The translations under genes and the position numbers were made by a program. 64,000 bases of DNA. It comes from Selaginella moellendorffii. Taxonomy: Eukaryota; Plantae; Lycopodiophyta. Below the pieces are notes generated by a model that saw nothing but the letters and a program-made list of their open reading frames with translations, had not been told where the DNA came from and searched no databases. The stretch covers positions 186,001 to 250,000 of the forward strand of contig NW_003314316.1 of NCBI RefSeq assembly GCF_000143415.4. The letters run 5' to 3'. Positions 1 through 31,549 of the stretch are shown piece after piece (position 1 is the first letter of the stretch; the number at the start of each line of letters is the position of its first letter).

Positions 1-3000
1 GACAAGAGGCGGAAGGAACCAAGACATGTGCCGTACAGGGATAGCAAGCTCACTCGACTTTTACAGGTTTGCGGGAATCACTTTGAAGTCCTGTGATGAT
101 TTAATAAGTGCCTCGTGACAGGATTCACTTGGTGGTAACAGCAGGACTGTGATGATAGGTATACAGCCTTGGCGATTTGTTTCCTTTTTTCTAATCTAAA
201 ATCCTTTTCGCAGCTTGTATCAGTCCGGCTGATTCAAATGTCGAGGAAACTCTTAATACTTTGAAGTACGCAAATCGGGCAAGAAATATCCAAAATAAAC
301 CAATTGTGAATAGAGATCCAATCGGGACAGAGATGCAGAAACTGCGACAGCAACTCAATCTCTTACAGGCAGAGCTTGTTTGTGCTCGTGCAAGTGAATG
401 CGCACCTACAGTTCTTGAGGTAAGGTCTTTTACAAAATCTAGCAAACATAATTGAAATTGAGTGGCTTCGTAGGTTTTGAAGCAAAAGCTCTCTTCGTTG
501 GAGACTAGCAATGAAAAACTACGCAGGGAGTTAATGGAGTCGCAAGAAAGCTGTAACAGTCTTTGTCAACGTGCTCTTGATGCTCAGGTGGAGCGTGATA
601 GGCTCTTACAGGTAGTTGAACGTCGTCCAACATCTGGTTATGACGAGCACACAGCTGAGGTAGAACGACCTTGTTTTTTCTTGTCTCTCGGTTTAATCTA
701 ATTGCTCGATTGCAGCCTACCAGCTTGCTGCAGAGTTACATGAGAACAATTCATGATTTAGAAGCAGAGCTACAGCTATTACGCACGTCGTGTTCTGGCG
801 ATGTTCGCCGCGTTTCAACTTCATCCGATGGAGGGTGCTCCGACATCGTTGACGGAAACCATGGTCTTCTATCAGAAACACGCTGCTTAATGTCGCATCT
901 GATTGAGAATTATGCAGACGTTTTTGAGGAGGATGCCATGACTGCTAAGGAGGTGGAGCATCATCTGTTTCTAAGGGAGTGTATGGATAAGGAACTTCAA
1001 GAGTTGAATATGCAGCTGAAGGAGAAAGAGGTAAACTTAAATTTTTAGAAACTGTGGCCAGGATTTTGAGATTTTCTTTTGAAAACATGATTTTTATCCG
1101 ATGGTTCACAACCTGAGCTTGTACTCTGCAGGCAGAAATGACTCGAGTTGCAAACAATGATGCTGCTGTACTCAAAGACCATTTCGATAAAAAAATACTG
1201 GAGCTTGAAGAGGAGAAGAAGAAGCTTCAGGTAAACTAAGCATTAGTCTTCTGTTTCTAATCATTTGAAATTATCAGATGGAGAAAAAGCTATTGTCGTC
1301 GGAGCTCGAATCACTTCATTCCTCTTCGGATGAACAGACCAAGAGGATTCAGAGTTCATACGCACAGAAGTTGAAAGATCTGGAAACTCAGGTACTATAT
1401 TCTCTTACACACTTTTTTTCTTCTTTTATTTTTATTAATTGTTTTCTTTCTGGTAGATTTCTGATTTAAAAAAGCAGCAGGAAAAACATGCACAGCTCTT
1501 GAGACTCAAGCAACGGAGTGATGATTCGGCGCAACGATTAGAGAATGAGATACACCGAATCAAGCAGCAGAAGGCAATGTTTTCTACCGGGCAGATTTTC
1601 AGTTGGACTTACTTTGCAAGCTTACCATCTCCAGGTGCATTTGCAAAACCGCATAAAGCAGGAATCTGAACATTTTAGAACATGGAAGGCTTGCCGGGAG
1701 AAAGAACTAATGCGCTTGCGCAAGGAAGGTAGGCGGAATGAGTATGAGATGCACAAGCTACAGACCTTGCATGAAAGGCAAAAACAGGTGAATGAAGGTG
1801 TTTATTGTCACCACCATTTTAACATTTTGGCCTTTGCAGGTACTGCATAGGAAAACTGAGGAAGCAGCCACAGCTAGTCGAAGGCTTAAAGAAGTCCTTG
1901 AATCTCGAAAACAGGAAGCTCGTGAAAACCATGTGTCAGGAACACCCGCTAAACTGACTGCGAAGACATTTCAGGTTTGCCTCAGGCGTCTCTTGGTTTG
2001 TTACTAAGCATTGATTTCAACTTTTGTAGCAATGGTTTGATAACGAACTAGAAAGTGCTGTTAGGCTGCGAGAGGCGAGGCTTGCTTACGAGAAGCAAAA
2101 TGCTTTGTAAGCACACTGGTCTCTCTTGGTTCAAATATTAACTTTTCTCTTTCAGCCAAGAGGGAGATGCGCGTTCGGACGCTCAGAACGCACCGACGAG
2201 GTATGCATTGCTTTGTCTATTTGGATGTTTCAGCTCATAATCGTTTCCCAACAGCCCGTGCGACACGGAGGCTCCTTCAGTATCATCTTTCTCGAATGGA
2301 CGTATTGATTCGTTGGAGAGGACGAGCACGGCAATTACCATCTCGACCACGGCAGTAGATTTAGAAGAGGAACAATATAGAGTCAGGGGACCAGTTCGGT
2401 GGCAGCAAGTGCGTACGCTTGGAGATGCCAAGGATCTACTCAACTTCGTTTTCAACGTTGCAGCCTGTGCAAGGTTATTGAACGGAATCTCCGGACGTTT
2501 TCTAACAACAGTAGTTTTGTGATTTGCTGCAGATGCCAGCTAGGTGATAGAGAACACGAAAATAAAGAACTCAATGAGAAAATCAATCTCTTGCTGGATG
2601 AACTGCGGCAAACCGAGTGTCAGAAGAAGCAACTAGAAGAGCTGATGCCCAGGACCACCAATAATACTGGTGTGTCCGATGCTCATGCGGACGAGCTCCT
2701 CCGGCTTGATATTGGGGGGCTTTTGGAAGAGCAAGTTATGAGTTTCTCCAATCCAGACGAACTTGGAGACGGGGTAAGTGTGTCGAATTGTGTGTGTGTG
2801 TGTGTGTGTGTGTGTTTTAGCAGTGTCTTCTTTTCTTTGCAGGCATGCCAGAGCATAGAACCAAATCCAGAGAGCTCAGGAAGGACTTGGAAATGGAGGA
2901 AAAGTGGCACTCAAAAGTGGCCGCTCCAGTTCAAGTGGAAGTGGCAAAAGCCTTGGCGGATAGCTCAGTGGACGCAAAAGAACGAGAAAGCTATAAGGCC

Positions 3001-3037
3001 GGCTTCCAGTGCGCTCAGGGTCCTGGACATGATTTGA
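1..3037 (+). CDS. Kinesin-4 (KIF4/FRA1-like) motor protein, 3' portion, multi-exon, begins before the window
   Basis: Spliced exons give [62 protein letters not shown] (motor end), a coiled-coil stalk ([19 protein letters not shown]...[10 protein letters not shown]) and the plant kinesin-4 tail [14 protein letters not shown]. Stop TGA at 3035-3037. Confidence 0.93.
2789..2815. repeat. (TG)n microsatellite in a kinesin intron
   Basis: tgtgtgtg... run seen directly. Confidence 0.9.
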
Positions 3038-3133
3038 TTCCGGGAGCTCCTTTTTACAAGTTTTTCTACTCGAGTTTTAGCATCCCAGAGCAGGCATATT
3101 TTGACCAGAGTCATGACCATGAAGTTTAAGTTG

Positions 3134-4861
3134 TCAACGCATTTTAGACCAGAGTGCCACCCCGGCAACGCTCCGGGCATCGAAGGGTCCGTCTAGAGCA
3201 TATTCTAGCGCATTTTCACCCAGGATGGCATCCCCTTGCTCCCTGCAAGCTCCCGCCATGGACATCCACGCCATGGAGCTGGGCTGGTACGGCATACACC
3301 CGGCCAGCTCGGCGGCCTTACACACCTCCCCGGAGCGCGCGAGCATGTCCACCATGCACACGAAATGCCTGGCCCCCGGCTCCACGCCGTACGTGGGCCA
3401 CATGGACACGAAATGCGCCCACCCCGTCCGTACGAGGCCCGCGTGTGCGCACGCTGCCAGGACGTTAATGAAGGTCACGCCGTCGGGGGCCTCGCCGTGG
3501 AGCACCATGGCATGGAAGATCCCCAGCGCATCCCGCAGATGCCCGCTCTGGGCATATGCCGCCAGCATGGCGGTCCAGGTGACGCGATCCCGGGAAGATT
3601 CCATGGCGTCAAAGAGATCCCTGGCCACTTCCAGGTGGCCCATCCTACCGTACATGGACAGTAGTGCATTGTGGGCCTGGGCGTCGTCGGGCCGTACGCC
3701 GCTGGCCAGGAGCTCGACATGGACGAGCTTGCCCTCGCGCTCGGCGGGCACGGCAGCGCAGGCATCGATCGCGGCCACAAATGTCTCGCGCGCTGGATTG
3801 ATCCCTTCCACGATCATGAGCTTGAAGAGATCCAAGGCCTCGCTGGGCCGCGCGCTCTGGCAGTAGCCAGAGATCATCGCGTTCCAGGCCACCGTGTCTC
3901 GATCGGGCATTTGATCGAAGATTTCTCGGGCACAGTCGATCTCGCCAAGCTTGTTGTAGCCTGAGATGATCGTAGTCCAAGAAATTGGATTAGGATGAGG
4001 CATGCGAGCCAGCAATCGCCGGGCTTCCTCCATTTGCCCTTTTTGGGCATATGCGGAAATAATCACGTTATAAGTCGCGGCTTCCGGGTCTTGGACCCGA
4101 TCGAAGAGATTCCTTGCTTCTCGGAGATCGTCATCGCTGCCGCCAATGTATGCGGCGATCATTGTCGTCCAGGATGTGGAGTCCTTGATTGCGATGCGAT
4201 CGAACATCCAGCGAGCGCGAGAAATATCCCCTATTTTGGCATATGCCGCGAAGAGGATCGTCTGCGCGACCACGTCCTGTTGTTGCAACCCATTAAAAAT
4301 TTCTTGCGAGCGATCGATCCGCCCTTGAGCTACACAAGCAGCCATGATCGAGGTGGACGAAACGAGGCCGAATTGTGGTGATCGATTAAGCAGCGCCATC
4401 GCGAGATCCAAATGCCCAGATTGGGCAAGCGCTGTGATTATCGCGTTCCAAGACACTGGATCTCTCTCCGGGCACTCACAGAAGAGATCGCTCGCCGCTA
4501 CCACTCTATCCGCCCTCGCCAGCGCCGCTATCACCGTGTTGTACGACACCACGTCCCGGGCGGGCATCTTGGCAAAGATTCTCTCCGCCTCGCCGGGCTG
4601 GGAGTGCCGTACGTGCGCCGCGATGAGAATATTCCAGGAGAAGAGGTTCCGTGCGGCAGCGATGGCGTCGAAGGCGTTCCGTGCGTCCGCCAGGCTGCCC
4701 ATAGTTCCGTACATTTGGACCAGGGTGTTGGCCAGGAGAGTGTTCTTTAGGTAGTGCCTGGTCGCGGCAATTTGGACGTGGACGCGGTGGACGTCGATTA
4801 GGGTCGCGCAGCGCTGGATCAATCCCAGGTACCTGTGGAGCTCTTCCTTGGCCAAGAACAT
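3134..4861 (-). CDS. PLS-class pentatricopeptide repeat protein with an E-like C-terminus (probable organellar RNA-editing factor), intronless
   Basis: Repeated 'A..F..MP.RD.V.W..MI' motifs, then PDGVTFINVLAACAHAGLV...G...F.SM...YGVEPGARHFVCMVDMLARSG...MPYQPSSMAW. No DYW domain. First ATG is at 4861 (4864 is TTG). Confidence 0.93.
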   Translation of the reverse strand: MFLAKEELHRYLGLIQRCATLIDVHRVHVQIAATRHYLKNTLLANTLVQMYGTMGSLADARNAFDAIAAARNLFSWNILIAAHVRHSQPGEAERIFAKMPARDVVSYNTVIAALARADRVVAASDLFCECPERDPVSWNAIITALAQSGHLDLAMALLNRSPQFGLVSSTSIMAACVAQGRIDRSQEIFNGLQQQDVVAQTILFAAYAKIGDISRARWMFDRIAIKDSTSWTTMIAAYIGGSDDDLREARNLFDRVQDPEAATYNVIISAYAQKGQMEEARRLLARMPHPNPISWTTIISGYNKLGEIDCAREIFDQMPDRDTVAWNAMISGYCQSARPSEALDLFKLMIVEGINPARETFVAAIDACAAVPAEREGKLVHVELLASGVRPDDAQAHNALLSMYGRMGHLEVARDLFDAMESSRDRVTWTAMLAAYAQSGHLRDALGIFHAMVLHGEAPDGVTFINVLAACAHAGLVRTGWAHFVSMWPTYGVEPGARHFVCMVDMLARSGEVCKAAELAGCMPYQPSSMAWMSMAGACREQGDAILGENALEYALDGPFDARSVAGVALWSKMR

Positions 4862-5350
4862 CAAAGCATTGATTGATCGATCGATTGAGAAGAGAAACTA
4901 TGGATGGATTGATAGATTTGGAAGAATGTATCGCATGCAATCAGATAAGCGCTCGCGCAGCCATTTTGACGTAGAATCTCTCTCTCTCTCTCTCTGTGTT
5001 CCTTGGAGAAGACGTAGCGTAGCGTCTTTGCGGGCGGATTCCAAGAGCCTACGCTCAATGCGGTTAATTTCCAAAAGAAAGACGCCACCATCAACAACAA
5101 CAAAGCAAACGCAAACGCACACACAACCATCACACGAAGAAGGCAAAAAAATGAGATAAAAATTCGGGCAGGGCCAGGGCTAGGGTTTGCCAGTTTCTTT
5201 GGAGGGCGAAGGCGCTAGAGGGCAGCGGCGAGCGCCTCGACATCGGGCCAGGTTTGGGGATTTTGGATTCGGTGTGGCCGCAGCCAGCAAGGCGAAGATC
5301 CGTCGCGACGGCGCCCCGGTTTATGGGATAGAGGGGGCTGTGCCCGTTTC

Positions 5351-7993
5351 ATGGGAGGGGGTGACACTTGCAGCAGCGACGATGATGAAGAGGAGCAAAG
5401 ACACGGGCCGCCGCTCAAGCGCATGAAGCTCTCCTCGCCTCACCAAGATTCTCGACGCCAGCACCATAATCTCTTGGCGCCATTTCCACTGCTGTCGCCC
5501 AGGCAATCCTCGTCGCTCTACCGCTCGCCAAAGCCCCACGAATCGCTCGGCATGGGTCCGCCGATTGAGAGCCAGATGATGGGGAGCAAGAAGCAAATCC
5601 GCCGCGTGGAGTTTGTCCGGATCATCACGCAAGCCTTGTACTCGCTGGGCTACTCTCGCGCCGCGGCATTGGTGGAAGAGGAATCCGGGGTCCCCTTGCA
5701 GCTGCCGGTGGTGTCCGACTTTCGCCGCGAGGTTTTGGACGGGAGGTGGGAGGAGAGCGTCGCCACTCTCGCCAAAATCGGTCCTTTACTGGACGAGACG
5801 CACAAGCTGGCGGCGTTCCTTATCCTCCAGCAAAAGTTCCTGGAGCTTCTTGTTGATCGCGGCGACGTTCTTGGCGCCCTGCGAACTCTGCGGACGGAGA
5901 TCTCGCCGCTGGGCGTGAACAGGCAACGCGTCCATGAGCTGGCGAGCTGTGTCGTTTGTCCCACCCGAGGGGATATCTTGGAGAAAGTGGAGTGGAAGGG
6001 AAGCGACACGAGGCCAGGATGGCGCTGCTGGAAAAAATACAAGCTTTGCTGCCGCCACACATTATGATCCCGGAGAGGCGGCTAGAACACCTTGTGGAGC
6101 AGGCGCTGGCGGTGCAGCGCGAGGGATGTATTTTCCACAACTCCGCTGAGACGGCACTGTCGCTCTATACCGACCACCAATGCGGACGTGACCAGATCCC
6201 GACTGAAACGGTCCAGGTACTTCATACTTCGTGCTTGTAGCTAGTTGTGGCTGGGTTTTGGTGAATGTAGGTTGCAGCAGTGTGTTTGTCTGTGTGTTTT
6301 GCCTCTTTGGTGAACTGTTCTTGGCTCTGTGTGTGCGTTTTTTCGACAATGTTATTTTAATTTTGATCTTTCTATACATAGTCCATTCTGGATTGATTCG
6401 TGTGTCCTGGGCTTCCATGTTTCAGGTACTAGAGGCTCACGACAATGAAGTATGGTACTTACAATTCTCGCGTGATGGCAGACACTTGGCGTCCGCATCT
6501 AAGGATTGTACAGCTATAATATGGGAGGTCAGTGCTCATGGATCTAGTTGCTTTCTCTTGGATGCTCTGGAGTCAGTTCTAGATCTTTTCTTTTCGTTCT
6601 TTTCCGCATTTGCTCTCTGAATTCGCTACCTACTTAAGTTTTGAATTGGTTTTTCTGCTCCTGCTCTAGTTCTCGTGTCTCGGTCATACAGTCTTCTTCT
6701 CTTCTTATGGTGCCTCCATGTACAGGTTGTAGATGATGATTTTGTAAGGCGGAAGCATACACTTGCCGGACATCACAAATCGGTATCGTTCGTAGCGTGG
6801 AGTCCAGACGACTCTATGATCTTGACGTGTGGAACTGAGGAGGCAGTGAAGCTGTGGGATACAGCAACAGGGGAATGCAAGCACACGTTTCAGAAGGCGA
6901 GCCACGGCTTCACGTCGTGTGCTTGGTTTCCGGACGGGAAAACCTTCGTCACCGGGGCCGCTGATAAGTGCATGTACAGGTGGGACTTGAGTGGTGCCGA
7001 GCTAGAAGTGTGGAAACCCAGGATGCCCAGGATCATCGACTTGGCCGTGACGCCTGACGGCAGCAACGTGGTGTGCATCTGCCACGACAAAGACATTCGA
7101 GTTTTCAACTTGGAGGACAAGACCGAGAGAGTGATCGAGGAGGATCACTCCATCACCTCGTTATCAGTCTCGCTCGACGGACGCTACCTCCTCGTCAACT
7201 TGGTGAGCCAGGAAATCCACTTATGGGACATGGCCTTGAACTCCAGGTCGCCGTGCAAGTACAAGGGCCATAGGCAGGGGCGCTACGTGATAAGGTCGTG
7301 CTTTGGTGGATCCGATCACGCATTTATTGTTAGTGGGAGTGAAGATTCTCAGGTAAATCTTTCTTCTTTTCCTAGTTCTTCGTTCTCTTAGTTCCGTCCT
7401 AGTTCTAGTGTGTTCACTTGCTTGCTCTTGTTTTCCATTCTTCGATCTTAGCTTCTTCACGGACAGTTCTTAGTTCTTGAGTTCTCACTTTGCTGCCTCC
7501 ACAAGTTTCTGTGAGTTTCCTTTGTTTGTTCTTGCGTTGCTTCGGGCTTAGTTTTGATGTTATCTTAGCTTCTTCTCGTACTGTCCTCGACTACTTTCTT
7601 AGTTCTTGAGTCCTCACTTTGCCTCCAAGTTTGTGTCCTTTGCTTGTTCTTGCTTTGCTTCGAGTTTAGTTTTGATGCTCTTGAACGGGTTTTAACTCTT
7701 GTTTCCTTTCTTGTCAGGTGTACATATGGCATAGGGGCAATGGGGAATTGCTAGAGGTGCTACCAGGCCATTCCGGCACTGTGAATTGCGTGAGCTGGAA
7801 TCCCAGCAATCCTCACATGTTTGCATCGGCTAGCGACGATCACACCATCCGGATTTGGGGCCTGAGCGCCACTAAGCGCGACCGCCACCGCCGATCGTCC
7901 GCAGCATCGCCCACTCCAAAGAGCAACGGTGGAATTAGCCACATTGTCAATGGCGGAACCCGAGAGCTTCTCGAGAACCTCAGACCTTTCTAA
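5351..7993 (+). CDS. WDR26/GID7-like LisH-CTLH-WD40 protein (CTLH E3 ligase subunit); apparent 1-nt frameshift near 6007
   Basis: Lis[20 protein letters not shown] ([14 protein letters not shown]), [23 protein letters not shown] repeats ([18 protein letters not shown]; [15 protein letters not shown]; [13 protein letters not shown]). GT donors at ~6217, 6528 and 7353. Confidence 0.88.
7447..7680. repeat. Imperfect tandem duplication (~115-130 bp) in the last WDR26 intron
   Basis: cttagcttcttc...ttcttagttcttgagt.ctcacttt...gttcttgc.ttgcttcg.g.ttagttttgatg occurs twice. Confidence 0.7.
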
Positions 7994-8273
7994 AAAGAAT
8001 TCCAAATTCTCTCTAGTACACATCCCTTCCTTCTTCCTCCACTCTTTTCTAGGGCTCTTCCAAGAACAATAATGGCCACTCGTTACTGATTCCTACAAAT
8101 CTATTGGGGAATTCCCATTGGCCCACGTCATTCGTATTCTTGTGGCCCTGTGTGGAGCAGTACATCTGCGTGGCCACTTTCCATATCGGGCTTTTAGCCA
8201 ATCCGCCTGTTTTAGAAAGTCAGCATATTCGTTTTGCGCATTCATTTTGCCGGGAATATGCCCTGGCGCAGGA

Positions 8274-9483
8274 ATGGCGATGGCGAGAAGAATGGGCGCT
8301 TCCCTTGCGCGGCGCGGCGTCGCCGGCGGCCGGGTTTTGCTCGCGAGGAGGAGCTCTTCCGGATGCGCCTTGGCTGCCGCTAGCGATTTCGATGAGTATC
8401 GGCGGTCGATCAACGGCGGGATCAGCCACAAGGCGCTTCTTGTGGATGCGGCGGGCACGCTCTTGATCCCGGCACAGCCGGCTGCTCAGGTATGGCCGCG
8501 GCGCCTCCTTCCCTCCTCTTCTTGATCCTTCCTGGCGAATATTTCAACCCTTTTCTCGAAGATTTCGTCTCGCATTTTGATCTGATCGAGTTTCGTGCCA
8601 AGGTCTACCGCGAGATCGGGAAGAAATATGGCGTGACGTACACGGAGCAAGAAATTCTGGCCCGGTATCGATGGGCATACTCGCAGCCGTGGTACCAGTC
8701 GCGATTGAGGTGACTCTTCTTCCCTTTCTTCTCTTTGTCTAGAAGATTGATCGAAGCTCTCAAACAAATGTTTCGATCTAGATATGTCCGAGACGCGCGG
8801 CCTTTCTGGGAGTACATCGTACAGCACGCCTCTGGGTGTTCGAGCAAAGAATATTTCGAGGAGCTGTATCATTACTACGAAACACCTGAGGTATGATCAC
8901 GCACAGTGTTTTCTCCTTTCAAGAAAGCTTTGTTTAATCTATCCTCTTCCTTTTGATGATGCGTGACAGGCCTGGTATGTCTCCGACCCAGATGCTGGTA
9001 TGGTCTTTCAAGCTCTCAAAGACGCGGGTGTCAAGATCGCCGTCGTCTCAAACTTTGATACCAGGCTGAGGCCGCTGATGAACTCGCTGGGATGTGATCA
9101 CTGGTTTGATGCCATGGCGATATCCGCGGAGGTGTGTTGTTTTCTTGTCTCTTCATCTGACTTGGTTTGTTTGTTTTTTTTTTCTTTTTCTTTCTAGGTG
9201 GAAGCCGAGAAGCCAAACCCGACAATTTTCTTGCATGCGTGTGAATTGGTGGGAGTCAAACCGGAAGACGCTGTGCACGTTGGAGATGACCGACGCAATG
9301 ATATCTGGGGTGCCAGGGATGCAGGCTGCGACGCTTGGCTCTGGGGTGGAGATGTTCAATCGTTTCGTGATGTAAGCTTTCTTGTCTGTTTTTTTCCTCG
9401 TATTATCTAGCTTCACACTTACAAAATCATAACAGGTTGCAACTAGAATGGGAGTCAATCTTCCCCAGGCGAAGGCGAGGTAA
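8274..9483 (+). CDS. HAD-superfamily hydrolase (HDHD3-like), probably organelle-targeted, about 6 exons
   Basis: Motif I LLVDAAGTL, motif II VVSNFDTRL, EAEKPNPTIF, motif IV HVGDDRRNDIWGARDAG. Ala/Arg/Ser-rich N-terminus. Stop TAA at 9481-9483. Confidence 0.88.
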
Positions 9484-10809
9484 AGTGTAAGGCGAGCTCC
9501 AAGTGAAAGAAAAGTACAGTCGCCTCTTGTATAGTTTCCCGGCTTTTGATACAGAGTTTCGCTGTAAAGCATACTAATGTGTGGACTGCTTGCAGCTGAG
9601 AACTGCATTGTAATTTTGCTTCTTATAATGACGCGAGATTGGACTGCCATCTCTATCAGCTCAGCGTAAATCTCGTTTCTTTTCCCAATGTTTCTTTAGC
9701 AGCAGGGCAGCGCAAAGAGAATCAAGCTGGCAACAGGTCCTAGAGCAAAAGAGCCTGTTGGTACGCACTGCCATCTATTTTCTGAGTTTCAACGTTATAC
9801 TAAGCTATACTACAGGGAGATGGAAAGGCCAGCCAGCGAGAAACGCTCAAAGCCCGTCCAGGAAAAAGGCGATTTGCTTTGTCGTCAGTGCCGACTAAAG
9901 CAGCATTTGTTTTGTGTGGACTCTTCATCAAAGTTAAAGGTAGCACAGCAATGAAACCGAGAGCACGACGAGACACAACTACCTTAAAATCGGGTACGAC
10001 ATTCGGGCACCATTGTTTTCTAACACCTTTTCTAACACCAACTTTGTGTTGCTGGAGCTAAGTTGTCTTAGTCACGCGCAGGGACCCAATGGCAAGCAAT
10101 TTGATAAACAAGCCGACGCCTCGTCTTCTCCAGCTCGCTGTATTGTGAAAGCTCCGGCCTTTGTTTGCGAGGTGGCCGACCCATGCGAGCGCCGACGGAG
10201 CAATCAGGTGAGACCGATGAATCCCACACATTTTGATTTCCTCTCAGAGCCATTTTCTTTGCTTTGCAGGTGACTCTTTGTTTCCCGTGCGCAGGGAATG
10301 AATATCGATTTCCTGGGATAGCAAAAGCCTCGGAATGATAGCTGTTGCTTCGTACGCACGAGAGTATGTCTGGCCAGACTTCACGTGTGCGACACAAGGT
10401 CCTCTCGTTGTGCTTCTCCCATGATCATGACTCGTTTTTCTTCTTGTTTTCCAGCCCTCTTGCGCGTTGGCTTAATGCTTGCTTGGTTGCTTCCACAGTA
10501 CAAGGAGCGTATGCAAAGATGGCGGTAGACGCATCCGGAATCTCGAGAGAGTATCTGTGCATGGCAAGTGTTTGTTTTCTTTCTTCTCCGGATTGTAATA
10601 ACACACTTTATCTCCGATAGTATGTACAGAGTTGCCGCATACGTCACTTGACGACAGTGAAGGAAAGCCTCATGTCTCAGTATAAAAGGCCAGGTTTGTT
10701 CTGGATTTTATTCATTCGTTCTTTCCTTCTTCGGAGTGTTCTGAGTGTGTTTGTGTGGTCCTCTCACAACACAAGCTCTATCCATCTTCTCCAAACTTGC
10801 AGAGTGATC

Positions 10810-11345
10810 ATGAGTGCCAATCTCGTTCTTCTTATCCTGGCAATGCTGCTTCTCTCGTTCCTGGGAGACAGTGCTCGTCTCTTGCCCACTGCTGAAGGTA
10901 GTCTAGTTGGTATTTTGTTTGAAAATCCAAGCTCACTCGTGGTGTGTCTCGCTTGCAGGAAATGGGAATGGCATTGCAGCAGCGGTGGAAGAACCGGGAA
11001 TGCATGAGCAAGAGGTAGGAGAGTGCACAAGAAGAGAGAGAGAGAGTGTGTGTATTTTGAGTTCTCATGAATTCCTAGAGTTTTAATTGACATTTGTGTT
11101 CTGGACAGATATATCCTCGAAAGCTCTGGGCAAGGTTAGACTATCCAAGCCCTGGAACTCATCCAGGCAATCCTCATGAACATCAACTTGAAGAAAATGT
11201 GGATTACTATCCTCCTCGCAACCACAACGACTCACCGCCGGCCCACAAACACATCCCTAGCAATGAGGATCGTCCCGAGCGGCACTTGGTAGATGCATTA
11301 GACTATGTCCCTGCTCGCACCCACACACCATCGCCAGTGCACTAA
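10810..11345 (+). CDS. Small secreted pre-propeptide (126 aa, exons 10810-10897, 10959-11014, 11109-11345) with three Asp-Tyr peptide motifs, RGF/GLV/CLEL-like
   Basis: Canonical GT-AG introns join in frame. Signal peptide MSANLVLLILAMLLLSFLGDSA|RLL, acidic pro-region, then DYPSPGTHPGNPH, DYYPPRNHNDSPPAH and C-terminal DYVPARTHTPSPVH*. Confidence 0.8.
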
Positions 11346-12987
11346 GCAAGCAGAGCTCTTGCTCTACAAACAGGTCCACGTCCTTTGAATCCACATAAAA
11401 ATGCTGACAAAAAAAAAGAGAGGTAAATCCGAGTGTGAGCTTCGTCTCCTCCCACGATCGTCTCGCATTCGGTGTAAATCAGCTAGAGAAGAAGATCAGG
11501 TAGGAGAGTTACAAGTAACACAGCGTGAGCAATAAACTTTGGTTTTGGATTAAATTGAGTGAGATTTGATTGTTTTTGTCAGCATCATGTCTTGGGTGAT
11601 TTTATTCTGATGCAGCGCGCGCTTTGAAACATCACGCTCGAGCAAACAGCTGTAACTTACAAACCGCATCCCAAATCTGTACGCACAGATTGAGTTTCTG
11701 TTGATCTGATTGGAATAAGCCTGGCATGCTATAAGTTGGGAAGAGAGAAACTCCAAAACAAAAGACATATGCAGAGTTCTTGCTCCTGACGGATTCTAGC
11801 TTCCATTTCCCTTCCAATCATCCAAAGTGTTGTTTTTTTCTCTTGAAACCATAGCACCAAATCTGCAAGATCTCCTTCCAAATGCCCATGAAAAAAATAT
11901 TGGGCCTTTCTTGGAGGTGATGGTCGCGTTACTACGACTTCCTCCACCTTTTGTATTTTCCCGTGTCAGGCAATAGCGAAGATTTGGTTGTACTTATCCT
12001 CGTTACAACACGAGGAACCCATGATTGACAGCAACTTGCAAACTCATTGGCACACTCAGCTCATCCGCGGCCAGGCCCCGCTCCTTGTTTGGAATTTCTA
12101 AGTTTCTAGTGGAGGGAAGCGTGTGATAACGCCATGATTCATCCACAGAGAGCAAAGAAATATATATGGCCATTCTCGCCGAAGTGCTCGGTGGGGGCCT
12201 GGCTTTCTCTGGGCATGGACGAGTGAGTAGTCATCTCCAACATATAGATGGCAAAGAGGTTAGAAGAGAAAAAAGAAGCAAACAGTACCGCAAACAAGCT
12301 TTCTATGCGTTGTTTGTAACAGTAAGCAATTGACCTTTGCTCCTGAAGCTTTGAAACTGATTTGAAAGAGTCGCGTCTCGTCGCGTCATTCATTCGCTCC
12401 ACATTGCACCGGTGTCAGCTTTGTTCTTCTCTCCCTGCACAAAAAATCTGATGATTCAGAGAACAAAGTGGCTTGCTATATTATCACAGCCATCATACCC
12501 AGCCGGAAGTGAGCCTCGAATATCATCCCCTCCCAATCCTAGTGACATCCATGCTCCAGATTCACCACGCTCCAAAAGCGATAAAGCAGCAAGCCACCAC
12601 GCGACGCTTCTCCTCCTAATCCTCCTCCGCCTGCGTGACACTTCTTAGCCTTAGCATGTAGTTCAAAGCTAAGAAAGAACAAAAGAGTTTCACTTACACT
12701 CGTCACTTCGCATGCACCTGACCTGTCCATTCTAAATCTTGAAATCTTTTTATATTTACCCCATTGACCACACACACTCCCTGTGCATGAATCTCATAAG
12801 CGAGCGAGTCAATGGTATCTACACACAGTGAACGCCTCACCTGTAAACAGGAGACCGCCTTGTTGAGAAAACAAAGAAAGAAAATCGCCTAAAAAGAAAC
12901 GAGGAATGTTGCTCTTACTTTGACGCCTTTTACCGTAGAAAACGTCGACAAGTCAGATCGCTCATGACGCAGAATAAGCCGCCCCAG

Positions 12988-14768
12988 CTACAGCTGTGCC
13001 TTGTCATCGGGCGGCCTTTCATCTTTGTAGCTGAACAGGAGGGGGGCTTCCGACTTTGACAAGGCTGTCAGGATTGCGCTAGAGAGAAGACAAGGCACCA
13101 AATACAGCAGAGCGGGCTGGGCTGCACCAGAGACAGAGTTCGCCACTGCACACAAAGAAAGAGCACTTGTTTTGTAGCACAGACCAGGCCAGACCATAAC
13201 ACTTACCAACCGTGAGAGTCAGTCCAGCTACGTAAGCAATAACTGAGTTTGAAAAGTATGTCTTTTGTGGTGCTGTCGGGATTGTATTGTTCTGGAACCC
13301 GGCACACCTGGCTTGGTCGAACCGGAGCATAAGAGCTATAAGCAACCCTGGAGCAGCGATGTCACCCAGGCCCAGGATCGATTCAGGGTGTGCAACTTCC
13401 GCCTGGAATCATCTTTAACAAGAACAGATTAACGAACCGACTAGTTTTCATACCTTCCAGCTTGGAAACACGAGTTTAACAGGCCCATCAAAAGCTGACG
13501 AGGTCGCCACCTGATCCAGACTAAATTCAAGTTAAAACTCTTTTCTTGCAGAAATCTCGTTTAGAAAACGTACCGTGACCATCACATTGTCACCAAAAAT
13601 TTGAGAAGAACCAAAAACCCAAAAAACGTCATAGAACAGCAGCCCGCAAAGCATCACGGCAGCGGTACTGAAGCTGCGAGGAAACACCCCAGAGGTTCAG
13701 GAACACAGATTAAAAAATGTAGAACTGCTAGTCACCTTCCAACAGAAAGAAGTTGCAAGAGCTCGGTCACAATACATACTGCCATAAGATTGTTGAATGT
13801 GAAAGGTGCTCCGGGTTGCTTGCTGGCGTAAGCGACTCCAATTCCAGCTGCAAGAATTGTTCTAAGAACACAGCCAATAACTCGTGGAAAAAACTCATGG
13901 CCATACCAAGCAATGCAATAATGTCGGCCGCAGTGACGGTAAGGCAGACAGGTTTTCCTTTGTCCGAAGCAAGCCAAGATGGCACGTCTAGACAACAAAA
14001 GAATTATCAGCACAAAAAAATGTAAAAAAAAAACAAAACAAAATAAAGCACTTACTGATTCGGACTGGAAGTGAATCCAGACGCGGGAAGAGCAACTTGA
14101 GAGGATTGGTTAAGTTATTTGCCACGGCAAAAGCTCCAGCGCAGCTTAGATAGATCGAGATGAACGTACGTAGATCGAGCTCCGGGAAGAACCTCAAGAG
14201 GCAGTAAAAACCAAAGAGTGATATGGAGCACAACACAGGCGCGGCGAGGCCTTGCTTGAAAGAAACCTGTTGCGTTTGCTGCCTCGCTAAACTAAGAAGG
14301 AAACAATGCAATGCACCCCTTTAGAATAAAAGAGGATGAAAAGGGAGCAAAGAAATACAGACCTTCGGTGGCTTCCAACGTAGACTGTCCACAGCGACAG
14401 GGAAGTAAAATAGATCGCGGCCGACCACTCGAATCGAGGCAACAATGGCACAACTGGGACTGCAACGAGCAAAGCTCCATAGGCAGCCTACACGCAAACA
14501 AGAACGATAATCTCCTTAGAAAAAAGAACCTACAATCGGAGACACTGCTCAGTCTTACCAGCTCTTTCGTAGTCCTCCCCCATTGCCATCCCCTCAGCTC
14601 CAGCACGTCGCCATTGCCATCGCTAGTCGCCGCGCACACGAATCTCACCCCGCGTCGCTGGAATTGCCGAAGAATGTAACGCCGCTCGCGCTCCAGCCGA
14701 GCACCTCCGCTGGCTGCGACAGGGGAAGACGAGGTCGAGAAGAGCGCCAAGCTCAATGGCAACACCAT
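12988..14768 (-). CDS. Signal peptide peptidase (A22B GxGD intramembrane aspartic protease), multi-exon, transit-peptide-like N-terminus
   Basis: Spliced exons give LLFYDVFWVF (YD), DNVMVTVAT..FDGPVKLVFP, ILGLGDIAAPG (GxGD) and AQPALLYLVP (PAL). Confidence 0.9.
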
Positions 14769-15993
14769 AGCTGTTGACCTAAAATGATAACACTAAACTT
14801 TAAGTTCTGTTAATTTGCTGCTGTTTTTTTTTTTTTTAATGCAAGTTTTGGAGTGATATGGTATGTATTAGTAATAAATAAGCATAAATAATTAGAGAAA
14901 ATTTTAACTGTGTTACTAAAAAGTTATAAAATTCATGAATAAAATATCTAAAATAAATGAAGAAACATATGTTTGAAATATGCAAGGATTTTTTGTTATC
15001 ATAGCACATAAATATTTATTTAGAAAAACAGAAAATAGCAAAAAGTCACAACCAACAGATTAAGAATATCCTAAAATATGTGGATATTCTAAGTACACCA
15101 TATATATAGCTTAATATAATCCACTACTATAATCAGAAGGGGCTAGTATTTTAAGAGCAATTTTATTTTTGCACTAACTGCCACTATATTCTATAGTTCT
15201 ATAGCTAATACTCTAATTGTGTTTTTGTTAATATTGTTATTAGTCCCATATATCTTATTTTTCCATATTATAATTTACTTTTTGTTAAAATTAAGATTAC
15301 CATAATTGCAAGCCCCCAGGCTGGGTTATTTCACCTTCAGATCAAAGTTTTATGTCCATTGAATCCATAGAGTCCAATTAAAATACATATTTTGCAGCAA
15401 GACAACTTAGGTATCACTCTAAAATTCCCATTGATACACACTACTATCTGTTTTCTGAGTATCAAGATTATACTAAGCAATACTATAGCAAGCACAAAGC
15501 CTACTCCAGAAAAGGCAATTGACTTTATCATCAATATAAAATATCATTTGTTTTGTTTTGTGTGGCAAAGTTAATAACATATAACATAAAACCAAAGAAT
15601 AAGATACAACTAAACTAGGTAGGCGTTAAAATCAAGTTTTACACTCAAAGACCTTCTTTTTCTTTAATAATTGATTTGGACTAGGAGTGAATCTAGATTT
15701 ATACATGTTTTACATTAACATGTATAAATTGAAGGAAGAATCTCAAGAGGAAGTAAAAACTAGAAAGTGATATAAAAAATACTTTTAGTGGCTTTTTTTT
15801 CCTAGTAGAGAGAGAGAGCTTTGTCCTTTGTCATATATGAATTAGGTGTAATGGAAAAAAGTTAAAGATTTAGCTTTATTAATTTTAATTTATAAGAGAG
15901 AAAGTATATAATAAATAATTTGCTACTATAAGTACTGGGAATAGGTATATTAATTGGGATTTAAACCCTTACTATTAGTGTATTACCTAACAA

Positions 15994-15995
<2 letters not shown>

Positions 15996-16061
<66 letters not shown>
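15996..16061. repeat. (TA)n microsatellite, ~65 bp
   Basis: Direct observation. Confidence 0.97.
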
Positions 16062-16063
<2 letters not shown>

Positions 16064-16329
16064 GTGTGTGTGATTTTCAAGAAATGCCTTATATATTTTT
16101 TGGTTTTCAGTGGAAATAATAACAATGATAAATATAACAGTATATATGCTCTCGTGACACATTACAACATCACATACTTATAAAATATTTTGTAAAGTGG
16201 TAAAGATAAAAATGGAAACACACAAGTACTATGGGTAATATTATAAAAAGAACATGTGGAAGTATATGAAATGAAAAGTGAAATGAAAACATGTTTATTT
16301 ATTAATTTTATAAAATATATAAATTTATA

Positions 16330-17800
16330 TTATTGATAGAGAATAAACATCAATAATCTTGGCAAATCTAGTTAGCTCTGAAAGTCTTCTATAATTTAGC
16401 AATAATAAAGCTTTCTTGGTGTATATAAATGTCCACTTTAGGATTTTGGTATGAGGTGTTGATAAAGATGTAATATATATGCTTGCAAGGAGCATATACC
16501 TTCTCATGTTCTTTGTGCTTTGTAAACTCTAAATATATGTAAAAAGGAAAGTCTTGAATGACAATTGTGTACTTTCCACCTTTTATTGACTATATACTCC
16601 TTTGCAAACACAATGATGTACTTCATAAAAAGAATCTTATATTCAAGCATTTGAGCTAAACTTATTTTACTTTGCTTTTACTTAAAGATAGTACCAATAA
16701 ATTTAATGGCTTTACCTTTTCTTGCTAGCCTCTTGTGCATCTCTGTGAGAATAATTCACTCATGTCTCTAACTCTCTTCTCAAGATTAAAACCAAATTTC
16801 TCAAAGTTTTCAATTTCATTTGAGGTGAGTGCAACTCCATTAGTAATAGCCATTTTTTAGGTACTACATTAGCTAGCTTCTTCCACAGGTAGTAACTTTG
16901 CTGAGAGGTTAGCAACTAGAACTTTGACAACAACCGCAATTACTATAGTGTGGAAAGTTGCAATAGTGGTGGCTTACTAGCATTAGAACCAATTAGGCCA
17001 TCTAATTAGGCTGCCTATTGCATGCTTTAAGTCAATACCTTTGTCACATCTTCAAATTTAGTCACTATAATGTCTTCAAGATGCTTTGTTTAGTTGGCAT
17101 TGGTGTTGCAACAATACAGCCATTACCATCTCGGAAATTCTACTTGCTTTTGTTCCCCATAAAAACATGGGGCTAGAACAAAAACACACTTATCACCATA
17201 AATCTAAACTTAACATTTGCCCCTTGAAAACATCTTTACACATCTTATATTGGACTACATTTGGCATATTACCCATTACCTTGTCTCTTGCTACAGTAAA
17301 TGATTTTAACTTATTGTGATGCACTCTCTTCATCAGCCACTTGAAGTGGCTTCATCTGGAGGCAGTGTCTAGGAGTAAAATGGTACTCAATATTAAGCTT
17401 GTGAGAGCTTTTTACTCCAATGTCCATACCAACATCTTCACTAATAAAGGAAAAATGATGCTTTAAGTGGACAATCTTCATATCACCAATAAAAGCTCAA
17501 GGAGTGTACTCCATAGATGTGTTGTGGACCACTTCCTCAAGTACAATTGCCACTAATCGGGAGGGTGGAGTTAATTTTCTCTTCATCCTATCATATAACA
17601 TCTTAACATAAGGCTTTATTTTCATGTATCTTCCTTTCTCGAATGCCAATGCTTTTAAAGATTATTTTATAGTGCATATCAAATCTAATAAACACATTTA
17701 TATACAAACTTTTAAGGAGCTCAAGGAGAACATAAAAACCATGATGATTATAACTTTTCTTAGTAGTTTATATACTTGGTTTTAATCTTGGGAATAAGGT
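16330..17800 (-). mobile_element. Highly degenerate hAT-like transposase remnant (boundaries approximate)
   Basis: Minus-strand fragment WTFIYTKK...RRLSEL resembles the hAT C-terminal dimerisation motif (W..F..IHTKKRNRL...RL..L). Many stops. Confidence 0.35.
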
Positions 17801-19274
17801 TTACATTGATAATATTTAAATTCTTGAAATATCAGTCTTGGAAATGGGGCTTCATAATCATAGCTTAGTTATAAATATAAAAGCTTCTAGAATTTAAATT
17901 ATTATATATACACATGCTCTATTGTTCTAATAAAAACCTACTTTGCTATGTATATATTCATTTTTACATAGGCCAATTTTCTAAGGAAATAAATTGCAAG
18001 GAAATATAGACCATATTATAGTGGCAAAGCACACTAGCCCACTGCCATTCTCTCATATGAGTTTACCTTTCAGTCTCGAAAATGTAGATAGAGTTGATTT
18101 TTTTATGTGATATTACTTTTAAGTTTTCAATAAATTTTGATTTCTTTTATTATTATTCCCAAACAACTCTCAAAAACTCTTATTAGGGATTCACCATATA
18201 AATTACAAATGTCATGGTTCTTAGTGCTTTCTGTTGTGTTATTCATTTTTTTATTTTTCTTGTTCTAGATTGTTATTTTAGAAATAATAAGAGCATTTCT
18301 ATCAATAGTGACAATGGTCTTCACTTTCACATATGGGTAATAATGATTAGGAGTGTAATATGGAAATTGTAGTAGTGAAACAAAATTAACATTCTCACAT
18401 TCTTTTAATCTAAAGCTCTTACTCATAGATTTTTTATTTCCTTACTTCCCATATTCTCAAGAACCCTAGAAAAATCTTTTGAATGAAAGAATAGTATGTA
18501 ATTATGTTGCAGATGTAAAACTAGTCAAAATATGAAGTAGTTAAATCAAAATATAACAATTCTAATAGTTACAGTAAAATAATATAGCTTTTTAATATGT
18601 AAGCCATAAATTTTCTTTTTCAATTTCCTACCTTACTCATCTATCTGACCAACTTTTCTTTGGCATTAATTAAGTTCCCTTTCCAAGGTTCACACCTATT
18701 GTACCAGCTCCTACTTGGACATATTTAAATTCAACTACTCATTGCATGAATAACAATCTTAGCCATCCATCTATAAATTCTTAAATTTTCTCTTAATCCC
18801 CCTCTTTGAGTTAAAATAGGTTTAAGATTTAGCTACACTCTCTACAAGCACAAGAAGCTAAACATACTAACCATCTAGGTTCCTAACATTCCTTGATATA
18901 ACAAGATTTGATTATAAAACCCCCTAAATCCCAAGCCTTGGATGCATCTTTTACTTTAGAACCCTAAGGGGAAAACACCATAGCATAATGGCTCAGTATA
19001 GATACTTTTACTCCCCCACCTTCATCCCAAAGGGAAACCCAAGCTTTTTAGAAAAGAGTGAGGACTAATGAGTTGTATAGTAATCAAATGAGGCACCACT
19101 TTATATAAGTTGAGAGCACCATTGTTAGTTTCCTTTTTGGGAGTGAGAGTTACTCTTGAGCACTTCCTTGGGAGGCTCTAACATCAACTTAATTTGGAAG
19201 CATCATTAGAAAATTCTTTTAAGACTAAGTCCTTAACCTCATAATCCTTACCATACTTTTAGACCCTCTGTAAG

Positions 19275-19920
19275 TGTAACATATGTGATTATCGGATGAG
19301 ATTTAAATATACTATCACCATGAATTTTTGGAATCTTGAGGGATAAATGGGGATAAAATAACTATTAAAGGCTTTTTTATTAAATAATTGCATTTTTTTC
19401 AGTTGATTTAAAGGAGAAAGATAGGGTGCACTATATGTGGTATCAAAGCAAATGGCATAAGTTCAATTCTCATTGATTAGTGGCTATTTAAAATATAATA
19501 TACCTTTGAAAAAGATATATTCCTACCTCTAAATTTAAAATTGTATATATTGGGCATCCAAGCGTATGTCCTTCCTCTTGTGAAGCATCCACAAATGAAG
19601 GTATCCACCATGGGACTGTGCTACAAGTAATTACCTAACATGGAATAACTAGTCTAGATAATAGAAAGATTGATAGATTTAGTGTGGAAATGGAGGTGTT
19701 AGTATCCCTTAGGTCAGTAAGGGTTGTTAGTCAAGTTAATGAGGACATGATATCTCTGAGCACATATGATCATCATGGGATGAAATTTAGATATAGTGTC
19801 ATTATGAATCTTTAGAACCTTAGGGGATAAATAGGGATAAAATAGCCACTAAAGGCTCTCTCATTAAGCAATTACCCTTTTTCCAATCGGCTTAAGTGGA
19901 GAGAAATAAGGTGTGCTATA
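19275..19920 (+). mobile_element. TRIM-like mini LTR element (LTRs ~19275-19435 and ~19757-19920)
   Basis: ~160 bp diverged direct repeats; tRNA-Met-type PBS tggtatcaaagc at 19438-19449 right after the first repeat; non-coding ~320 bp interior; degenerate TSD gtaag/ataaa. Confidence 0.65.
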
Positions 19921-21937
19921 ATAAACCCCTCCCCCACCCCCTTTTGAGCTTTTGCCCCATGATTTATATTATTTGGACTTGACTTTAGACTTGGTCTCAT
20001 CTAATTAACTTTTTATCATTTCAGTTGTGATTTTAGGGATCCTTTAGCATATGACACCTCGAGGAGCTAGTTTTTTACAACTCCACCACCTATAGAAAAA
20101 ATTTATTACCCACATCAAACATATTTATTCAATTCTACAACTTATTGACAATGGCTTCGAAGGCATCCTTCAACTTAACAATATGCCTAAATTAGTGTCC
20201 TCAACTAAGAACTTATGACACTGAGATATAGATGTCTCTATACCCTTCATCTCACCTCACCCTAGTAAAATATTGGGACTTAAACCTAGTTTTGCTTTAC
20301 TAGAGGGTTAGGACTCGGATCTAACCTTCGTATAATATGTTTATGAATTCAACATCCCTTTAAAGAATTAAGTGTTGCTCCTTACGTTTGGTCAACCTAA
20401 CTAAACCCATATTAATTAGTTTATTGTTGGTGTGCCATAGGACCCAACTTGGGACATTTCTCAATTTCTCAAATAAATGTCTTAATTGAACTTTATATGA
20501 GTATATAAAGTTTTACCTCATAGAAATTACTCACTAGATCTCATGCAATCACCAAATTCTCCTTTAATTTCTATGTTTCTTCACAAAATGGAAATTTTTT
20601 CCACTTCATATGAAACTTTTTCACCTCATATCCTTGTCACATGCTTTTGTAAAAATTGAGGATGGCTTTGACTTCATATTCATTTTCCTTGGATAACCTT
20701 GGGTAAGGGTTTTACTTGGTCTTTGTGAAGTAGATCCTCAAAGTATAACTTGAGTAAATTTATATGGAACACAAGGTGTATCTTCCCCATCTCCTGGAAA
20801 AGTCGAAAGCAGTAAGCCACCTTACCAATTCAAGCCTTGATTTTATAGAGCCCCACAAATCTATTTAAAGAACTTAAAATCACTTCATTCTAGGAATACA
20901 TGCACTTTACCTTTGAATTAATTTCTAGATAATCCCACTTGGTAATATTAAATTCTTGATGTTCAACCACACTTTCTCTCTAAGTCGGAACTCTATGTAT
21001 TTAGACTTTTGGTTTGCATATTTAATTTGCTTTTGTTAAGCCCATTCTAAACAATCCTTCATCAGATTCCAAATGTTGAATTTTTTTGCCATAAATGCCT
21101 CTACTACTAGTAACTTTCCATAGTACTTGGTTACACCAAGTTTTATAAGATTTTCAATAGTTTGTCTATTGATGACTTTTTATGGACTCACCCCAATATT
21201 CAAATGTGGTGAGTTGTTGTAATATATTTCTACAAGTCTTAAATGACTTATTCAATTAGTTTTGTTTCTTAAGACATAGCATTACAAATAATCCTCCAGT
21301 TGCCTATTCATCCTTTTTGTTTGCCCATCTATCAAGAAGTGTTATCACTATCATACTTGACTCAATACTTATTACCTGTCTATAGGTGATAGGTTGTACT
21401 ATTCTAAAAGAGTTCTCTCGAACGTGTTGGTGAAAATCTTATCTCAATATAAGATTATTTCTTTTAGCCTTTCCCACACTTGAATTACTTATTCAAAGGA
21501 CAACTTCACTACACCTTTTGCATCCACTTCTATTGTGATGGGTATGAAATATGTTATTTTAAAAAACTGATCCACCACCATGAATATCACATCATACCTT
21601 TAACTTGGGGGAAGTCCTATAATGAAGTCTATTGTAAGACATTTCCATGGACAATCAAGGATTGGAAGGCTTTGCAAAGCTTTATTACCCTTAGTCATAG
21701 CCTTCACTTGTTGATATTTGCCATATCTTGCAAAAAGTCCATCATAACACTCTTCTAAGGCCACTTTTCTTAGTTTCTCTTGTGGAATATACACCTTTAT
21801 TTGCTTATAATAAATGAGTTTATTGCATTCCATATAACCAGTATTTTCTTCCTTATGTGGCTTGCCTCTTTAGTAAGTATCTTGTGCCTCTAAGTTCCTT
21901 AGGAACATTTCTTGTGTTAGACTATTATCTTCATATG

Positions 21938-26247: not shown

Positions 26248-26519
26248 TAGAAGTGGAAGTTGCTCTTGAGCACTTTTTTGGGAGGCCTCTTTGGCATCTC
26301 TCGAGTCCATGCTCATTCTCACTTAACCTTAACTCAGTTTAGAAGTGCCACTAGAGAAGAACAAGCTATATAAGTTCATGGTATAGAAGTGAGAGTTGCT
26401 CTTGAGCACTTTTTTGGGAGGCCTCTTTGGCATCCCTCGAGTCCATGTTCATTCTCACTTAACCTTAACTCAATTTAGAAGTACCACTAGAGAAGAACAA
26501 GTTATATGAGTTTATGGTA
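26248..26519. repeat. 136-bp tandem duplication
   Basis: tagaagtg..agttgctcttgagcacttttttgggaggcctc...atggta at 26248-26383 and 26384-26519. Confidence 0.9.
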
Positions 26520-26599
26520 GATGATTGTCATCATTTAAGACAGAAGAAGAGAGAAGCTTATTAAACCTCAATCCCTAGGGAAATGATGGATTAGGAAAA

Positions 26600-31500: not shown

Positions 31501-31549
31501 GTGTTTTAGAGTGTTTAAATGTCTTAATGATGGCTTTATTTGACAATGA

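Follow-up and report, generated by a model that had tools for sequence, protein, structure and literature searches.

Does a gene of the RGF/GLV/CLEL family of root peptide hormones ever encode more than one ligand? The question is raised by a locus at positions 10810–11345 of a 64,000-nucleotide stretch of Selaginella moellendorffii DNA (contig NW_003314316.1, positions 186,001–250,000; hereafter the window). A sequence-only reading had proposed that this locus encodes a secreted precursor with three tandem peptide domains, each beginning with Asp-Tyr (DY). We consider it probable that the locus is an expressed S. moellendorffii gene (LOC9661910) for a 126-aa secreted pre-propeptide of RGF/GLV/CLEL Group H, in which the peptide module is triplicated. 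The evidence comes from transcript contigs, from the modules themselves, from their similarity to published RGF-like peptides and from a comparison of two alleles.

Exon-wise translation reproduced the proposed gene model exactly, with 29 residues, one residue from a split codon, 18 residues and 78 residues adding up to 126. All parts of the gene lie on the plus strand. Coding exon 1 (10810–10897) provides the start codon and signal peptide and encodes MSANLVLLILAMLLLSFLGDSARLLPTAE plus 1 nt. It is followed by intron 1 (10898–10958; GT..AG, 61 nt) and by coding exon 2 (10959–11014), whose product, the variable segment NGNGIAAAVEEPGMHEQE, is the acidic pro-region that had been described. Intron 2 (11015–11108; GT..AG, 94 nt) holds a (GA)n/(GT)n run. 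Coding exon 3 (11109–11345) encodes 78 aa with three RGF-like modules and closes with the stop codon at 11343–11345.

Transcript evidence was drawn from contigs of four public runs (X1, X2, X3, and X9) from four studies, placed on positions 10300–12000. Joints that skip the 61 and 94 nt of the coding introns between GT and AG (10895>10957 and 11012>11107, both with a cut of +2) were found in contigs of all four runs. The claim that two canonical introns are removed to give a 126-aa protein is thus borne out by both translation and splicing. At 11581, 45 nt past an AATAAA signal (11531–11536), one X3 contig ends in A8 followed by Illumina adapter. This end marks the poly(A) site, and the 3′ untranslated region extends from 11346 to about 11581. 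A second sequence version, belonging to the other allele, is spliced identically and shows 28 differences over 299 nt of exon 3 and the 3′ untranslated region. The gene is expressed from both alleles, and their transcripts are spliced alike.

The three DY-initiated, His-terminated motifs were found in exon 3 at exactly the positions that had been proposed. Module 1 (11118–11177) opens with RKLW, an R-x-L-x site of the subtilase type, and ARL, and continues with DYPSPGTHPGNPH (13 aa, 11139–11177). Module 2 (11178–11246), the most degenerate of the three, comprises EHQLEENV and then DYYPPRNHNDSPPAH (15 aa, 11202–11246). In module 3 (11274–11342), PERHLVDAL precedes DYVPARTHTPSPVH (14 aa, 11301–11342), and the stop codon follows directly. 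D1, Y2, H8, and the terminal H are present in every module. Module 3 (...PVH) ends the protein; modules 1 and 2 also end in H but are internal. Prolines occupy positions 9 and 12 in module 1, 12 and 13 in module 2, and 10 and 12 in module 3.

Such a recurrence is difficult to obtain by chance. When the exon 3 product was shuffled 200,000 times, three DY.{5}H motifs appeared in a single shuffle and three DY.{5}H.{4,6}H motifs in none. With the DY positions held fixed, H8 fell into all three modules in 254 of 200,000 shuffles. Six-frame translation of the whole window gave six DY.{5}H motifs in all, three at this gene and the others in AT-rich repeat DNA. The rarity of the motif in both the shuffles and the window argues that its recurrence is not a chance effect. 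Local alignments, each judged against 5000 shuffles, also connect the modules to one another: module 2 aligns with module 3 with a score of 49 (p ≤ 2e-4), and the two are linked at the DNA level by a repeat (11211–11226 and 11310–11325) with 14 of 16 bases alike and a spacing of 99 nt. Judged from these alignments, module 2 is clearly related to module 3.

The lycophyte "Group H" RGF-like peptides conserve the eighth His and the last His, their precursors mostly end at the peptide, and 14-residue forms occur occasionally (Furumizu and Sawa, 2021; PMC8329595). The retention of D1, Y2, H8, and the terminal H in all modules, together with the end of the protein at module 3, suggests a fit to this group. 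The sequence-only reading had regarded the C-terminal His as divergent. That view is refuted, as a terminal His is a described hallmark of Group H (PMC8329595). The pro-motif R-x-L-V-D-x-[ILV] immediately before DY is full in module 3 (RHLVDAL-DY), partial in module 1 (RKLWARL-DY), and weak in module 2 (HQLEENV-DY). In the sequence table of PMC8329595, R-x-LVD-x-[ILV]-DY is found in Selaginella (acanthonota, kraussiana, and selaginoides), Isoetes, and many ferns, and we counted LVDH[ILV]DY 31 times.

Comparison with individual Group H precursors extends this picture. Published examples include S. kraussiana ZFGK-2006594 (69 aa, ...RRVLVDNIDYREAATHPPPKNHHV), S. acanthonota ZYCD-2034010, an Osmunda sequence (...ERFLVDHIDYPSARTHPPTEPPH), and Semo 412527/441866 (DYTPAAIHPPRSH) (PMC8329595). 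These precursors share with LOC9661910 a signal peptide, a variable pro-region, R-x-LVD-x-[ILV]-DY, the DY start, H8, and the terminal His; in addition, the peptide lies at the very C-terminus or just before it, and lengths of 13 to 14 residues occur. They differ in having one module rather than three and in the C-terminal part of the peptide, where the usual PP[HRK]xH contrasts with the tails PGNPH, NDSPPAH, and TPSPVH and with the lack of a Pro9-Pro10 pair.

The modules were aligned individually with eight published RGF C-termini. Module 3 gave p ≤ 2e-4 to 4e-3 across the eight, and p ≤ 2e-4 to 8e-4 against the fern and Selaginella RGF-like C-termini; its score of 64 with the Osmunda stretch ERFLVDHIDYPSARTHPPTEPPH was reached by none of 5000 shuffles. 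For module 1 the values ranged from about 4e-4 to 6e-2, with Sticherus, Osmunda, and S. selaginoides at about 4e-4 to 8e-4, and the comparison with DYPS..THP peptides gave p of about 5e-4. Module 2 was the weakest family match (p about 2e-3 to 6e-2). The proposal that the modules are RGF/GLV/CLEL-like therefore stands on shuffle tests, most firmly for module 3 (p ≤ 2e-4 to 8e-4) and at about 5e-4 for module 1 against its best matches. Module 1 shares DYxxPGxHP with Arabidopsis RGF1/GLV11/CLEL8 (DYSNPGHHPPRHN), and, as DYPSPGTHP..., shares DYxxPxTHP with Marchantia MpRGF (DYAEPDTHPPESN). Like both of these, it has 13 residues, starts with DY, and has Pro after H8, and the TPST, subtilase, and RGI pathway would be expected to be alike. 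The differences are a His end here and an Asn end there, and the presence of several modules.

As ligands, the modules might instead belong to PSY or CIF/TWS1, other families of Asp-Tyr sulfopeptides with which they have the DY start and a Pro/His-rich composition in common. A multi-copy precursor is known among the PSY peptides, OsPSY7 having four copies (PMC7913133). The published PSY pattern, DYxxxx[AP]NxxHxP (PMC7913133), nevertheless fails in all three modules, which have T, N, and T, respectively, at position 7 and H in place of N at position 8. CIF/TWS1 peptides are about 21 aa long, with the query pattern DYxxxxPxPPLxxPxPF (PMC8462819); neither PxPPL nor the required length is found in any of the three modules. 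PSY and CIF/TWS1 identities were both rejected on these grounds, and a PSK reading was rejected on its published pattern. The presence of the RGF-specific H8 and LVD pro-motif also argues against these families, and we regard such an assignment as very improbable. The comparison with RGF, PSY, and CIF patterns that had been proposed with the original reading thus leaves an RGF-type fit.

A second alternative is a small Pro/His-rich secreted or cell-wall protein in which the DY repeats are structural. The exon 3 product is indeed rich in these residues, 14 Pro and 9 His among its 78, and neither it nor the exon 1 product matched a Pfam family. A structural role would not account for the specific similarity to RGF-like C-termini, which includes the pro-motif, or for the coincidence of the protein end with the peptide end, as in Group H RGFs. 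The spacing of the modules and the R-x-L-x sites likewise suit precursor processing, and a structural protein is extremely improbable.

Assignment as a precursor depends on where translation starts. The 126-aa product begins with MSAN, followed by a 14-residue hydrophobic core, LVLLILAMLLLSFL, and the small-residue stretch GDSA, and the hydropathy peak of this leader reaches an 11-residue Kyte-Doolittle mean of up to 3.55. The predicted product is a small precursor with a signal-peptide-like N-terminus, as is expected of the RGF family; the signal peptide of the sequence-only reading is upheld in the form of this N-terminal hydrophobic core. RefSeq gives a different start. Its protein for the window allele, "uncharacterized protein LOC9661910 isoform X2" (232 aa, Selaginella moellendorffii), has final 126 residues identical to our model, preceded by an extra 106-aa N-terminal extension from ATG 10335 that buries the signal peptide; its sequence agrees with the leader exons at 10335–10809.

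The other haplotype provides an independent view of the same segment. Its RefSeq protein is XP_024520489.1, "uncharacterized protein LOC9659969" (176 aa), encoded in GL377678.1 in the same gene order (LisH-WD40, HAD hydrolase, this gene, Peptidase_A22B). GL377678.1 is colinear with window positions 341–15563, and the shared neighbors and colinear alignment identify it as the other haplotype of the sequenced heterozygous plant. The match to RefSeq proteins of S. moellendorffii agrees with the lycophyte origin that had been supposed. The suggestion that annotation could miss the gene did not hold, as models exist for both haplotypes, though they are unnamed and probably mis-started.

Taken at face value, the RefSeq model describes a 232-aa protein from ATG 10335 with internal hydrophobic stretches, either membrane-anchored or non-secreted. 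It draws support from the spliced 5′ leader (10335–10809) seen in the transcript contigs, in which leader exons are joined to the exon with ATG 10810. The leader exons run from 10335 (or further upstream) to 10398, from 10455 or 10499 to 10563, and from 10621 or 10630 to 10809, and the introns between them from 10399 to 10454 or 10498 (GT-AG) and from 10564 to 10620 or 10629 (GC-AG). One isoform of the window allele is open from 10335 to the stop. In the other haplotype, however, the upstream reading frame is broken by indels in the leader: 2 nt are deleted, and 3 nt and an 8-nt (GT)n stretch are inserted. The model XP_024520489.1 keeps a long open reading frame (ORF) only via another acceptor and a donor at 10693, skipping the signal-peptide segment. 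Use of the alternative acceptors observed in RNA changes the frame, as in leader isoforms spliced to 10455, and protein searches gave no homologue of the 106-aa extension. By comparison, the 126-aa ORF from ATG 10810 is unbroken, and its exon 1 intact, in both haplotypes. Because this ORF is intact and the upstream frame is broken in the other haplotype, ATG 10810 was taken as the functional start; starts at ATG 10672 and ATG 10335 were discarded, since the indels break both frames there. The extension is probably a longest-ORF artefact and the RefSeq models of both haplotypes probably mis-started, which makes a membrane-anchored or non-secreted 232-aa product improbable.

Other features of the leader were noted. 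A TATA-like box, TATAAAAG (10681–10688, plus strand), is a putative promoter element recognized from sequence only, and the stretch from about 10715 to 10809 is free of ATG. If this box were used as a promoter, ATG 10810 would be the first ATG of the transcript; contigs cannot reveal transcript starts. An alternative donor (CAG/GT at 10693/10694) joined to the exon 2 acceptor at 10959 drops the start codon and signal peptide. The isoform stays in frame from ATG 10672, appears as a loose contig end in run X3, and is probably non-productive. Length polymorphisms between the haplotypes include a 3-nt CCT insertion at 10671 and an 8-nt (GT)n expansion at 10744, both also present in transcript contigs. 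An exact-sequence look-up of the LOC9661910 isoform X2 protein returned no contig. A 1.8-kb contig of run X9 ties the leader to sequence more than 1.3 kb further upstream and probably reaches the neighboring HAD-hydrolase gene; read-through or overlap of untranslated regions is possible, and one contig spanning two genes is not proof of a single transcript.

Database searches were made with the exon products separately, and the joined product was examined as the RefSeq protein LOC9661910 isoform X2. With the 78-aa exon 3 product as query, a word-indexed search of proteins in a length window of 43–136 aa, which excludes the longer RefSeq models, gave no candidate. An exhaustive HMMER search of the same product against 1.84 billion representatives had XP_024520489.1 as its sole match, and a search with XP_024520489.1 led to LOC9661910 isoform X2, so that these two S. 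moellendorffii proteins are the sole relatives in the databases searched. Blastn and tblastn found no paralogue within the window. Whole-protein searches are insensitive to motifs as short as these modules.

Comparison of the two alleles bears on whether the modules are maintained. Exon 3 differs between haplotypes by 18 synonymous and 8 non-synonymous changes (pS 0.34, pN 0.044, pN/pS about 0.13), an excess of synonymous change that points to purifying selection on its reading frame. In exon 2, four amino-acid differences fall in 18 codons. The modules have seven synonymous and three non-synonymous differences, with a synonymous divergence of 0.23. The three non-synonymous changes lie in modules 1 and 2, at positions 3, 4, and 14, which are variable across the family. 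No module differs between the alleles at D1, Y2, H8, or the terminal H, and module 3 with its pro-motif shows no amino-acid change.

These data also bear on a more conventional explanation, in which the RGF precursor yields a single ligand, only the C-terminal module 3 being processed, and modules 1 and 2 are decaying duplicates or docking sites for TPST or subtilase. Module 3 alone has the full R-x-LVD-x-L-DY, is C-terminal, and is free of amino-acid change between alleles. Pro10 is missing from module 1, and Pro9 and Pro10 from module 2; the three non-synonymous changes within modules all fall in these two. R-x-L-x sites are found after the leader (RLLP), 7 residues before module 1 (RKLW), and 7 residues before module 3 (RHLV); module 2 has no basic site of this type upstream, HQLE standing at the equivalent place. 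In addition, all 203 of 203 surveyed RGFs have one domain each (PMC8708909). Decay is harder to reconcile with the retention of D1, Y2, H8, and the terminal H in all modules of both alleles despite a synonymous divergence of 0.23, and with the confinement of the non-synonymous changes to family-variable positions. Module 1, like module 3, is preceded by an R-x-L-x site 7 residues upstream, and it matches published DYPS..THP peptides with p of about 5e-4. A precursor with module 3 as its single ligand is possible, but we think it doubtful. Considered one by one, module 3 is very likely a ligand and module 1 likely so, and the status of module 2 is uncertain.

If the gene encodes a triplicated RGF precursor, its processing can be outlined by analogy with the biogenesis of Arabidopsis CLEL6/CLEL9 and GLV1. 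The signal peptide would be removed in the endoplasmic reticulum, and an SBT6.1-type subtilase would cut in the Golgi at the R-x-L-x sites RLLP, RKLW, and RHLV; SBT6.1 sites are of the RXXL/RXLX type (PMC4983112). TPST would sulfate the Tyr of each Asp-Tyr, and prolines would be hydroxylated. An Asp-dependent subtilase would then free the N-terminal DY, N-terminal maturation being Asp-dependent (PMC7162652). C-terminal trimming would be needed for modules 1 and 2 only, as the stop codon directly follows module 3. Once released, the sulfopeptides of 13 to 15 residues would be read by RGI-type leucine-rich repeat receptor kinases; both TPST and RGI orthologues have been reported in S. moellendorffii (PMC8462819). 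Membership of the RGF family is evident in the sequence, and secretion, sulfation, and the cleavage sites are predicted on this analogy.

Several points weigh against a triplicated, secreted Group H precursor. The four runs are presumed to be RNA, although their spliced joints and poly(A) tail, and their contigs totaling 25–57 Mb, are consistent with transcriptomes. The contigs bear a long spliced leader with several upstream ATGs, and translation from ATG 10810 on such transcripts may be inefficient. The signal peptide was judged from Kyte-Doolittle hydropathy, and the start codon was deduced from the haplotype comparison. The "highly conserved" Pro9-Pro10 pair occurs in none of the three modules, which have P9-G10, N9-D10, and T9-P10, respectively. 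Only Pro within the peptide's second half is required for RGF (PMC8708909), and an accepted member with T9-P10, maize DYAGPRTHTPSHN, is also without the pair. No orthologue from another species was found in the word-indexed or HMMER protein searches. Modules are not distinguished from spacers by their non-synonymous to synonymous ratios (3:7 versus 10:14, Fisher p 0.70), a comparison of two alleles with very low power. Finally, we infer the release, sulfation, and receptor perception of the modules, and any activity beyond the terminal module, from the systems named above.

How unusual would such a precursor be? Each of 203 surveyed RGFs has one domain, and five S. moellendorffii genes are listed (PMC8708909), the same five as in PMC8329595. 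This survey bears out the statement that RGF hormones normally occur once per precursor and that three is unusual. The three modules break a regularity that has been observed and is not part of the family definition. The three peptides are absent from the supplements of both papers, and the gene lies outside their five S. moellendorffii genes. A literal search for the three peptides and both LOC numbers across a searchable literature of about 8.4 million papers gave no match, and a phrase search for multi-domain RGF/GLV precursors returned unrelated papers only. A 2026 survey gives, in its accessible part, six RGF genes and five DY motifs for S. moellendorffii (PMC13503966). A three-module RGF precursor thus appears to be unreported and this gene unlisted in PMC8708909 and PMC8329595, though it may be among the six of the 2026 survey, as far as the accessible part goes. 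Precedents exist in other families: OsPSY7 carries four PSY peptide copies (PMC7913133), and multi-domain CLE and CEP precursors are known (cited in PMC8708909). In each case one secreted precursor holds several tandem ligand modules with spacers, but the ligand families and receptors are others. The modules of LOC9661910 differ in sequence and length, and would therefore give three different ligands rather than copies of one.

The ligand-coding part of the gene coincides with an island of haplotype divergence (10941–11375, without strand) that covers exon 2, intron 2, and the coding part of exon 3, with substitutions of about 11–14% against a 1% background. The haplotypes align over 15.2 kb with a median divergence of 1.0% per 200 nt, and the sole internal stretch above 5% is 10841–11440, with a peak of 13%; this stretch matches positions 10500–11100 of the GL377678.1 locus with 9–13% substitutions. 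Divergence is 10.7% in exon 2, 13.8% in intron 2, and 11.0% in exon 3, compared with 1.7% in the leader, 1.6% in intron 1, and 1.5% in the 3′ untranslated region. Synonymous divergence in the island is about 0.34, versus a background of about 0.015. A 12-nt indel separates the haplotypes in the (GA)n run of intron 2 (about 11030–11045). As the excess is mostly synonymous and intronic, it suggests a much older coalescence of a segment of 0.4–0.5 kb. The ligand-coding part may have been under long-term balancing selection, or an unseen paralogue may have acted as donor in gene conversion; no third copy of the gene was found in the protein databases searched. The combined proposal, that one gene releases three different sulfated RGF-type ligands and that their coding segment is kept as two ancient alleles by balancing selection, is in our judgment unlikely. 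If it were true, this one locus would yield as many as five different ligands in a heterozygote, five rather than six because module 3 is identical in both alleles.

The genes surrounding LOC9661910 are common to both haplotypes. A LisH/WD40 (WDR26-like) gene and an HAD-family hydrolase gene (window 5351–9470), both on the plus strand, are neighbors in each, and a Peptidase_A22B (signal peptide peptidase) gene lies downstream on the minus strand at about 13000–14800. A PPR gene and a kinesin gene are located further upstream in GL377678.1. An AT-rich block (30–38% GC, window 14000–34000) begins where haplotype colinearity stops, at about 15563. Within it, 19275–19920 matches positions 16987–17793 of the GL377678.1 locus in inverted orientation with 79–87% identity, which suggests that transposon content differs between the haplotypes.

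Two more general consequences follow. Longest-ORF annotation can conceal a peptide-hormone gene: neither RefSeq model begins with a signal peptide, so that both would be dropped from family surveys based on the secretome. The island of allelic divergence over the ligand-coding part is a separate population-genetic puzzle, and a testable one. With LOC9661910, S. moellendorffii gains an unlisted member of Group H, which may be the counterpart of the R-x-LVD-x-I-DY genes of S. kraussiana, S. acanthonota, and S. selaginoides. Among RGF precursors it would be the first in which several ligand modules differ from one another, an architecture known for CLE, CEP, and PSY. RGF/GLV peptides control the root stem-cell niche, and lycophyte roots evolved independently of euphyllophyte roots; for these reasons the Selaginella RGF repertoire is used to reason on the origin of root signaling. 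If all three ligands are released, that repertoire would include a hormone "polyprotein" in a family thought to provide strictly one ligand per gene.

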